64,000 nt of DNA, taken from NCBI RefSeq assembly GCF_040938485.1, contig NW_027271575.1, positions 186,001 through 250,000 on the forward strand. The letters are read 5' to 3'. Position numbers and translations under genes: made by a program. The notes under the pieces are model-generated. The model was not told where the DNA came from. It saw only the letters and a program-made list of their open reading frames with translations, and did not search any database. This document shows, piece by piece, positions 23,601 to 26,600 of this stretch; the first letter of the stretch is position 1; each line of letters opens with the position of its first letter. Origin of the DNA: Diadema antillarum. Its lineage: Eukaryota.

Positions 23601-26600
23601 TTAGATACAGAGAGAGAGTGTGGCTAGAGAAGTAAATGAAGTATGAACGTTATGTCTGATGAATCTCAGTCAGCAAATCATTTTTAGCACTTGAACGGCA
23701 AAAACAAAAAATGTTTATCACCAAACTCATCTTTTCCTCAGTAACGCTTCTAAATATGAAGCTTTTAGATATGAAGATGCTTCTTAATATGAAGATCAAT
23801 ACATAGTGTAGTAATTATGATCTCGTCCGTAGCTTGCATCGTCGAAAATGCAATGTCATGTTTCTTACCATATCCAATCCAGGTAAAGCAGCCGACGCTA
23901 AGGCGAAACCACAGATGCCTGCCCGACAAGGAAGTAAGTAATATCAATACATTTTGTTATACATTTTCAAATATATTTTTGAAGCTTTTTTCTTTGTTTG
24001 TTTATGATAGTTATATCGTGTGAGTGTGACTACAAAAAAAAATACATGCCATTAAAGTGAGACAATACCAGCAATAGCAACTGAGTAGACCTGCCTCCAA
24101 AGCTAATCAAGAATTCAATTAACCGCGTATTAATATTGAGGTTTATCAAGGCATTAGTCTTTGGAGTGAAACGCCACTAATATTGATAAGTAATATTTTG
24201 GCCTGATAAACCTCCCTATGACCCCCAAGGAAAACGGACAAAAAAGAATGAATAATCAAACCTCGAAGTGGTTAGCAGTAATGAATTCAGTTAAGTGCAC
24301 AAAACGCCTTCATGAACTTTGATGAATTAGAAACAAACAACTCTTCATGTTTAATTTTTTTTTAGCAGAAAGCGTTGAAGCCAAGAATGCCAAGGCGCCT
24401 GCCCAACAACCCGCAGCTAAAGCCGGAGGCATCACGATGTCTCAGGCCACAGCGGGCAAGAAACCTGCCCATGGACCAGCCCAAGCGCAACAAAAACCGC
24501 CTCAACAAGGGGCGGCGGCAGCAACCGGTGCGGCGGGCGGCATGAACTTGCAGCAAGCTTTGGGCGGGAAAGGAGCCAAACCTGCCGTGCAACAAAGCCA
24601 ACAGCAGAAGGCGCCAAACGCAACGGGAGGAATGACTCTTCAACAAGCTACAGCTGGAAAGGTACATCAATATTTTTGCTGAAAAATGTGTGGCAATATC
24701 AATTAAATCAACAGAATCTCCAATATCATCAGATCATAAAAAAAGTCTTCCTCTATCGACTCTTTTATATTGAGATGTAATTCCCTCAGTTCTATTTAGT
24801 TTAGTTCAGTTCATTTTCTTTAATCACGGCAATTTGCTTCAGCAAAGCTGTTTTTCGGCAAATCCTTGAACAACACACACAACACACACACACACACACA
24901 CTCACAAATCCATACAAACTGCATACAATGATAGAGTAAACGACACAACTCAACGAAAACAAACATAAACAATAAAAAGTACAATCAAGAAAAAAAAAGA
25001 AATGTATAGGCTACCATTAAACAAGATAAAAAAATGATAACTTTGGAGCAGCTTGAAACTAGCAGAGAAATATTAAGAATTTGGTTATTGCATTAATGAA
25101 GCTCTTTTTCTTTTCTTACCGATTTGCAGGGTGGTGCCAAAGCAGCCAGCGGACAACCAACCGGAGGCATGACTCTACAGCAAGCCGTAGCAGGGAAGAC
25201 GGCAGGCAAGCCGCAAGGGGTGCAACAACCCAACCAAGCACCTCAACAAGCCGCCACAAAACCGCAAGGCCAACCTCAACCGCCAAAGGGCAGTGGCATG
25301 ACCATGGCACAAGCTACCGGCGGTAAGAAAGCGGTTCAACCGCAGCCTCCGCAGAAGGGCGGAATAACCATGGAGCAGGCGACAGCGGGTAAAAAGCCGG
25401 TTCAACCGCAGCTACCAGCCCGCGGTGGAATGACCATGGAGCAGGCAACTGGCGGTAAAAAAGCGGTCCAACCGCAGCCGCCTCCGACCGGTGGGATGAC
25501 ATTTGAGCAAGCGACAGGAGGCAAGAAAACAGCGGCACCCCAGCAACCTCAAGCTCCCCAGCGTGGCGGCGGCATGACGATGGCGCAAGCGACCGGCGGG
25601 AAAACCGCGGCACAGCCGCAACCCCCGCAACGTGGCGGCATGACATTGGAGCAGGCAACAGGTGGGAAACTCGCAGTCACCAAGCAGGCACCTCCGCGAC
25701 AGCAAGGTGGCGTAACCATGCAACAAGCGATGAACGGAAAGTCAGGACCAAAACCAGGTTAGTATATTATTCGTCAATTGCACCAGCATGTTTCATATCA
25801 GTATTTGTATTAACTCATTATTTCGTCATGGAGGTGTACTTAATAGGGCATATTAAATTTTTGTAAAAATGAGGTTCTTTGCATAATTACCAGAGATTAT
25901 CATTGCATTGAATATTTCACTGTGTCAATGTGTCGGATAATTTGAAGGTGGCACCAAATACACTCACATGGTTTGATGGCACACAGAATGAACTTCTTCT
26001 TTTTTTTCAAAGACACTGGTGTCCGGCAATTTTTCAGTTGATATCTCTTTTGAGTTTCGTGAATAATCCAGTCGAGCGGTGATGTAACCAACTCTTATGA
26101 TGAGAGGATTCATTAACAGTAGTTTCAAAGTGAGTTCAAAATAAGTAACATGGTAATGTTTTACCGTAAGAATTGAGATGCGCATGAATGTACCAAGCGG
26201 ATCGTGCTCTGTCAGATATAGACTAATGCATCACGAAATCCTGTTTAACATCGAACACGGATTTTAGCATGAATAGTATAACCCAGTTCTAATGTTAGTT
26301 TGTTCGGAATTTAACAGGAGAAAAAACACCCCAACAAATGTGTCGTCCATAATCATAATAATGTCGACAGGGGAAAGGAATGTTGCCTTTAACAAGTCGT
26401 TGATGAAAATCCCACTACCCCCCCCCCCCCCCCCCCCCCCACCTGCCCACCACAGCCGCTGCCGTTGCACCTACAGCTCAGCAAGCTCCAGGGGCAAAGC
26501 AGCGGAGAGAGTCGGAGCCAGAATCGGGTGCCAAGCCGGCTGCGGGCGCTCCTGCTGCCAAGAGACAGTCTGTAGCAGCTTTGCCGAGACAGGTACGGAA

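Follow-up and report, generated by a model that had tools for sequence, protein, structure and literature searches.

Arrays of short motifs in known proteins and the Diadema locus

Receptor tails that carry linear motifs in arrays are known, and the tail of LRP5/6, with five PPPSPxS motifs in tandem, is one example. In the arrays of motifs for LC8 (dynein light chain), such as that of ASCIZ, short motifs bind a dimeric hub and build a ladder. WH2/thymosin repeats, as in Spire and Cordon-bleu, and the LD motifs of paxillin (LDxLLxxL) are further systems in which short motifs are present in several copies. The present work concerns a 64,000-nucleotide stretch of the genome of Diadema antillarum (contig NW_027271575.1, positions 186,001 to 250,000 of the forward strand; the whole stretch is called the window below), in which eleven copies of a twelve-residue motif lie in the cytoplasmic linker of a predicted receptor with a kinase-like domain. 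The reading preferred here, with a probability of about 0.55, is that the array consists of multivalent docking motifs that let a putatively dead-kinase receptor act as a scaffold. Its consensus, copy number and pitch are not described in anything that was searched.

With the LRP5/6 tail, the array shares multiple copies of one short motif in the disordered cytoplasmic tail of a single-pass receptor, where copy number would amplify a signal or give avidity. The consensus is a different one, however, and has none of the Ser/Pro phospho-site logic, and the copies number eleven at a pitch of about 22 residues, between the membrane and the putatively dead kinase domain. The LC8 arrays, with seven to eleven short motifs that hold a conserved Gln and are joined by short linkers in a disordered chain, are a good working model for arrays of this sort. 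In the present motif, by contrast, the residue before the Gln is variable and the one after it is Ala, and an LC8-binding array was rejected as an explanation, the anchor [TIV]-Q-[TV] having no match in the linker of any of the seven orthologues.

The WH2/thymosin repeats resemble the array in that their short motifs stand in tandem, begin with a small amphipathic segment and hold a Gly and basic residues; they are disordered and placed under the membrane, and WH2 repeats bind repeated subunits of one partner. The core described here has 12 residues, against 17-22 in WH2; no WH2 match was returned by Pfam at E up to 10, and the consensus has neither the L-L-x-x-I hydrophobic triad nor LKK[VT], so that this candidate was also set aside. 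The paxillin LD motifs are likewise short docking motifs in several copies and form helices, and the brittle-star copies (...SLDQAMAS...) resemble the LDELMAS of LD4. Any helix in the present motif would be cut short by the G-K, unlike in LD motifs, and the LD assignment was rejected as well, since in a profile of 47 copies from six species the position after the L is variable and positions +3, +4 and +7 are A, M/T and K rather than Leu. A likeness of ...ATGGK(K/T)A... to segments of the histone H3 tail is taken by us to be a low-complexity coincidence.

The motif copies, their codons and their spacers

All eleven copies, [GS]G[MIV][TN][LMF]xQAxxGK, occur in a single reading frame of the + strand and are spread over two spliced exons, three in exon A and eight in exon B. 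The closest database protein, an unnamed protein of D. setosum (P0020), is 96% identical to these two exons, and the bounds of both agree with its annotation. The exons and their intron were placed by splice signals and the motif copies by the frame scan and by alignment of the copies with each other:

24369-24661, + strand, repeat exon A, 293 nucleotides, copies 1-3, 96% identical to P0020 residues 676-773
24425-24460, + strand, motif copy 1
24536-24571, + strand, motif copy 2, the Asn variant, with Asn at the same place in Strongylocentrotus and Lytechinus
24626-24661, + strand, motif copy 3, the end of which coincides with the end of the exon
24662-25129, + strand, intron between the repeat exons, gt...ag, 468 nucleotides, with an (AC)n microsatellite
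25130-25757, + strand, repeat exon B, 628 nucleotides, copies 4-11, 96% identical to P0020 residues 773-982
25163-25198, + strand, motif copy 4
25292-25327, + strand, motif copy 5, with S where the second genomic copy and D. setosum have G
25358-25393, + strand, motif copy 6
25424-25459, + strand, motif copy 7
25490-25525, + strand, motif copy 8, with F where D. setosum has L
25568-25603, + strand, motif copy 9
25634-25669, + strand, motif copy 10
25706-25741, + strand, motif copy 11

Exon A is bounded by the acceptor cag/AA at 24369 and the donor AAG/gta after 24661, and the intron that follows it carries an in-frame stop six codons in; exon B lies between the acceptor cag/GGT at 25130 and the donor G/gtt after 25757. 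A sequence-only reading had spread the array over two exons at 24369-25757, which are exactly the outer exon bounds.

The second G, the Q, the A, the last G and the K of the motif are invariant in 11/11 copies (G4, Q9, A10, G13 and K14 of the alignment). The first G is replaced by S in one copy and the T by N in another, which leaves G3 and T6 nearly invariant, and the two hydrophobic positions are M/I/V and L/M/F. Frame scan and copy alignment thus bear out the eleven-copy array with its invariant QA and GK and its two hydrophobic positions, as the sequence-only reading had it. The copies have also diverged at the nucleotide level: all four codons are used for each of Gly, Ala and Thr, and both for each of Gln and Lys. 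In pairwise comparison between copies, core codon differences amount to 288 synonymous vs 183 non-synonymous, in agreement with the earlier remark that third codon positions differ while residues are kept. Because synonymous sites are saturated between copies and the residues are nevertheless kept, the duplications appear to be old and under purifying selection.

The earlier description as a 22-residue repeat holds in part. From copy to copy, the intervals are 37, 30, 23 and 43 residues in the proximal part and 22, 22, 22, 26, 22 and 24 in the distal part, so that 22 residues separate the copies in about half of the ten intervals and 23-43 in the others; Tandem Repeats Finder reports the corresponding 66-nucleotide period at 25293-25518 only. 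The spacers, of about ten residues, are variable and rich in A, Q and P, as had been claimed (A 63, Q 51 and P 44 in 288 residues).

Several Diadema copies have a PxxPx[KR] sequence (PQPPQK, PQLPAR, PQAPQR, PQPPQR) directly before their GG, at 25260-25700 in the spacers of copies 5-10. As a conserved unit, this class II SH3 ligand was rejected: there are 5 matches in Diadema, but 2, 1, 1, 0, 0 and 0 in the other orthologues, and on this comparison it is lineage-specific and lies outside the conserved unit.

Receptor architecture around the array

When P0020 was mapped on the window, about 26 exons were found between 10.2 and 34.3 kb on the + strand. The parts of the gene that frame the array are as follows:

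10201-34337, + strand, whole gene: signal region, five thrombospondin type-1 (TSP1) exons, membrane span, cytoplasmic linker and kinase-like domain (P0020 mapping, Pfam)
18703-18876, + strand, transmembrane-span exon, upstream of the array (window frames and P0020 mapping)
21205-21477, + strand, exon of an Arg-Pro-x-Ser/Thr array, a different repeat in the same cytoplasmic stretch (window frames and P0020 mapping)
27907-34337, + strand, exons of the tyrosine-kinase-like domain and the C-terminus, downstream of the array (P0020 mapping)

Pfam recognises only thrombospondin type-1 repeats and kinase families in P0020, including a tyrosine-kinase-type domain (PF07714) at residues 1047-1304 with E 1.6e-73, and returns no domain for residues 393-1046. 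The predicted product is therefore described here as a type-I receptor that has five thrombospondin type-1 repeats outside the cell, a single membrane span and a putatively dead kinase-like domain. The motif array occupies P0020 residues 693-979, in the cytoplasmic juxtamembrane linker; it follows the Arg-Pro-x-Ser/Thr array and precedes the kinase-like domain. The location under the membrane, which had been proposed from the window alone, is borne out by this order of transmembrane and kinase exons.

The upstream exon at 21205-21477 holds about ten copies of an Arg-Pro-Gly-Thr/Ser repeat that is unrelated to the motif, so the linker carries two different motif arrays. Before the array, at the end of the preceding exon (22980-23111), all orthologues have a strongly conserved block that ends in GLTDILGxPxTxVMQG. 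In its Patiria equivalent, LKQLDAQLQEMAG, AlphaFold2 places a helix at 556-569, and the ending VMQGK of the block has a faint likeness to the end of the motif.

A neuropeptide precursor was considered and rejected, since the copies stand after a membrane span and before a kinase domain, within one annotated protein in seven species, and KK follows only 5/11 of them. As to splicing, skipping exon A (293 nucleotides) or exon B (628 nucleotides) singly would shift the frame. Because the two together make 921 nucleotides, a multiple of 3, and keep the frame, the whole array could be removable as one cassette by alternative splicing. Isoform X2 entries are present for several orthologues.

Conservation across echinoderms

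Searching the whole protein library by phmmer with exon B gave one strong match, LOC756169 of S. purpuratus (1260 residues). Word-index searches with regions of the database proteins led to D. setosum (P0020), Lytechinus variegatus (P0019), the sea stars Patiria (P0021) and Asterias (P0022), the brittle star Amphiura (P0023) and the feather star Anneissia (P0024). The motif stands at the same place in these orthologues, with 8 copies in Strongylocentrotus, 8 in Lytechinus, 7 in Patiria, 6-7 in Asterias and 7 in Amphiura; the feather star has 2-3 weak copies, for example GITLNEAMDGGK. In urchins, sea stars and the brittle star, copies are most often 22 residues apart.

Starting from a profile of the eleven copies, one round of iteration on the orthologues collected 47 copies from six species (Diadema 11, S. 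purpuratus 8, Lytechinus 8, Patiria 7, Asterias 6, Amphiura 7), and further, weaker copies were found by reading the sequences. The resulting profile reads G35 G38 [M24 I10 V8] [T34 S7 N6] [L24 M17 V5] x Q41 A46 [M21 T17] x G39 K43. Single copies can be traced between species by position: in each of the three urchins, copy number two is the Asn variant, GMNLQQA[LM]GGKGA.

In global alignments of the linker, identity to Diadema was consistently higher in the core than in the spacers:

S. purpuratus: core 63%, spacers 34%
Patiria: core 48%, spacers 25%
Amphiura: core 47%, spacers 23%

These comparisons favour the core to some extent, as the motifs anchor the alignments, yet the spacers also differ in length. 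Within the genus, among the window, the second genomic copy and D. setosum, 2/99 core residues vary (S/G and F/L, both within the allowed sets) and 14/174 spacer residues do (Fisher p = 0.058, or 0.041 with the x positions pooled into the core). The orthologues in urchins, sea stars and the brittle star thus keep the motif, which is neither absent nor unconstrained in close relatives. Judging by these sequences, it is older than the split of the echinoderm classes, which parted more than 450 million years ago.

This pattern bears on the simplest alternative, namely that the region is a flexible low-complexity tether grown by tandem duplication, in which the motif is a by-product with no specific binding role. 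The distal copies do form a 66-nucleotide tandem array in the DNA (71% matches), copy number varies by lineage (11, 8, 7, 6, 2-3), and structure prediction gives pure disorder. However, synonymous sites are saturated between the copies, the same twelve positions were kept across classes while the spacers diverged in sequence and length, and copies are positionally orthologous, as the GMNLQQA[LM]GGKGA copy of the three urchins exemplifies. Q, A, G and K would have been lost from a neutral tether; the explanation is largely refuted by the conservation pattern and is held to be highly improbable.

Searches within the genome and for a known family

Outside the two repeat exons, a regular-expression scan for G[MIV][TN][LMF]xQA found no match in the six frames of the window. 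The back-translated motif pattern (35 places, about 17 specified bases) has 19 matches in the 1.75-Gb assembly, all of them in this gene (contig C687) or in its second copy (contig C129), with 0 on the reverse strand and 0 for a reversed control pattern in the same assembly. The array is far beyond chance expectation. Both repeat exons recur at G000:C129:2428452-2429837, where the encoded protein is 97% identical and the DNA is 94.9% identical to the window over 3.5 kb including introns, with 31 indel breaks. In an assembly of 1.75 Gb, this copy probably represents the other haplotype, left uncollapsed, rather than a paralogue. Besides it, other genomic loci gave only weak low-complexity matches, with E about 0.5.

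The motif had been called unrecognised, and no known repeat family was matched in Pfam, the PDB or the protein library. For exons A and B, the only Pfam match with E up to 10 was one to Flg_new, of 7 bits and due to chance. The PDB had no match for the array by sequence, and by the profile of the eleven copies it gave only weak chance matches (E 0.036-0.23), the best of which were designed helical repeat proteins. With exon B, the ESM Atlas returned no usable match, and the word-index protein search returned none either, a blank that is expected from its length limit, as the full-length relatives are 4-6 times longer than the query. The phmmer search of exon B against the library of 1.8 billion proteins gave 17 matches. 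Just two of these, the S. purpuratus orthologue and a fragment from a sea star, are genuine, the others being translated CRISPR arrays and low-complexity repeats of bacteria or phages. In the literature, neither LOC756169 nor any of five variants of the motif string was found in the papers searched, and no named family of sea-urchin thrombospondin-repeat receptor kinases was found.

Predicted structure and composition

Of the 420 residues of the linker, 3 are aromatic and none is Tyr, and its charge is net basic (K+R 46, D+E 16); with no Tyr present, phosphotyrosine docking is not available there. AlphaFold2, given exon B with an alignment of the orthologues, returned a mean predicted local distance difference test score (pLDDT) of 49 and no secondary structure. 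For the whole Patiria protein, the array had pLDDT 26-32 and again no secondary structure, in a model that is poor overall (mean pLDDT 40).

By its sequence, the array has the form of generic short linear motifs, that is, conserved islands of 3-12 residues between poorly conserved disordered flanks, partner binding being putative. The sequence-only reading had proposed the same character, and it stands well: the islands sit in variable Q/P/A spacers in many copies, show no predicted fold and are kept across echinoderm classes. The single helical turn that it had added fared less well, as AlphaFold2 shows no helix, and the idea is drawn only from residues of the helix-capping type. Under established helix-capping rules, with the designed-protein matches as a lead, the pattern may resemble a minimal capped helix: a hydrophobic residue, T/S/N, Q/E three residues on, Ala and Gly-Lys. 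In those designed helical repeats (dTor_6x35L, 4yxx; TRP_18, 8s6p/9h10; E 0.036-0.18), the repeats start with G-V-S-L-E-Q-A-L, which fits G-hydrophobic-S/T-L-E-Q-A as the start of an N-capped helix and serves as a lead only. The helix runs on in the designed proteins, whereas here Gly-Gly-Lys follows after five residues, and the match is a weak one that arose by chance with artificial proteins and carries no homology.

A proposed docking array on a receptor scaffold and its alternatives

In the preferred reading of multivalent docking motifs, each copy of G-G-[MIV]-[TSN]-[LMV]-x-Q-A-[MT]-x-G-K would dock the same cytosolic protein or domain. On binding, T/S/N may act as a helix N-cap, with Q-A packing on the partner and G-K ending the turn. 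The pitch would follow from the Ala/Gln/Pro linkers, which are about ten residues long, and multivalency would be the point of the array: one receptor could hold many copies of a partner, or bind one multivalent partner with high avidity, and would signal as a scaffold, not as an enzyme.

Several points weigh against this reading, besides the anchoring of the linker alignments by the motifs. AlphaFold2 shows neither a helix nor raised confidence at the motifs, although both models were built from alignments of 8 rows and the one of the whole protein is poor. In camarodont urchins, two copies in the middle of the array have decayed (REGITMKHAPGGK, GSVTIEQETGVK); because of these decayed copies and the few copies of the feather star, a high copy number is not strictly required. 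The exon structure, finally, is based on splice signals and the annotated protein of a sister sequence.

The high conservation of single residues could also be explained if the copies were repeated substrate sites of a modifying enzyme, acting on the Lys (ubiquitin, acetyl or methyl), the Gln or the Thr/Ser, in a tunable cluster like the upstream Arg-Pro-x-Ser/Thr array. K is kept in 43/47 copies and Q in 41/47, and the second array in the same linker is itself one of putative phosphorylation sites. The Gly-rich setting ...T-G-G-K... is also reminiscent of acetylated Lys sites in histone tails, which serves as a lead only. Against this, the Thr position is Asn in 6/47 copies, and three urchins share this Asn at the orthologous copy; because of the Asn in these copies, phosphorylation at this position cannot be obligatory. 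Moreover, conservation extends over ten positions, including an almost invariant Ala, which is beyond the needs of most modification sites, and the motif is not known to match any modification consensus. Such a cluster of modification sites is regarded as unlikely.

A partner within the same protein would offer another explanation, in which the kinase-like domain of the receptor is itself what the motifs bind, either in cis or in trans from one receptor to its neighbour. As pseudo-substrates or clustering elements, they would control the conformation or oligomerisation of the putatively dead kinase. Juxtamembrane segments commonly regulate receptor kinases, and this general knowledge lends the idea some weight. 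The array always adjoins the kinase-like domain, with the last copy 40-70 residues ahead of it in every orthologue, and the confinement of the motif to this gene in the genome fits a partner within the same protein. However, the AlphaFold2 model of the whole Patiria protein suggests no docking (motif pLDDT 26-32), though that model is too poor to exclude it, and one or two copies would be enough for regulation in cis, which leaves eleven at a regular pitch unexplained. This explanation is considered quite unlikely.

The sequence-only reading had further offered the array as a sticker-spacer polymer that drives the formation of condensates beneath the membrane. A disordered chain that is rich in proline and glutamine, is anchored at the membrane and carries eleven conserved "stickers" at even intervals would suit such a role, as would the few Arg-Gly-Gly sites ahead of the motifs (3 in Diadema). 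The near absence of aromatic residues and the net basic charge, by contrast, leave the chain without the stickers typical of self-associating regions, and an aromatic or prion-like sticker-spacer region was rejected on these counts (3 aromatics and 0 Tyr in 420 residues; 3 RGG). Since the linker lacks the usual aromatic stickers, only partner-dependent (heterotypic) condensation is left as a plausible option. As condensation would need a multivalent partner, it is a special case of docking rather than a true alternative, and as a driving role of the array it is judged very unlikely.

Returning to docking by multivalent motifs, a more specific form of it would take the array, from its 22-residue pitch in urchins, sea stars and the brittle star, to be a molecular ladder. 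A single subunit of a partner that is itself periodic or dimeric, for instance a hub dimer or a cytoskeletal filament, would bind at each rung, and ligand on the thrombospondin repeats would organise a partner-dependent assembly or condensate under the membrane. This extension is put forward tentatively and is judged improbable.

Other features of the window

A run that encodes poly-proline (+ frame) or poly-glycine (- frame) is found at 26407-26440 and 26264-26470. It belongs to the intron directly ahead of the coding exon that follows (about 26440-26604) and lies outside the annotated protein. A run of N occurs in the window near 27.5-27.75 kb. On the - strand, open frames with several hydrophobic spans at 43511-44914 look like exons of a multi-pass transporter gene, and a 252-residue open frame at 62402-63160 resembles, by eye, the C-terminal part of a reverse transcriptase from a retrotransposon of the non-LTR (long terminal repeat) type.

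Significance for the receptor family

A receptor whose kinase domain is dead has to signal by way of its binding partners. The motif, which has been kept in six to eleven copies at a regular pitch from a time before the echinoderm classes separated (with 2-3 weak copies in the feather star), provides a concrete and synthesisable handle on this question, and a peptide of 12 to 22 residues could serve directly as bait for the partner and so give access to the pathway. Should the partner domain prove to be widespread, the catalogue of linear motifs would gain a new class; if the motif is private to this receptor, it would be a clean natural example of avidity by motif repetition. Should the ladder reading be true, it would represent a new signalling mode for a dead receptor kinase, through a class of motif that is so far undescribed and that seems to be confined to this family of deuterostome receptors.

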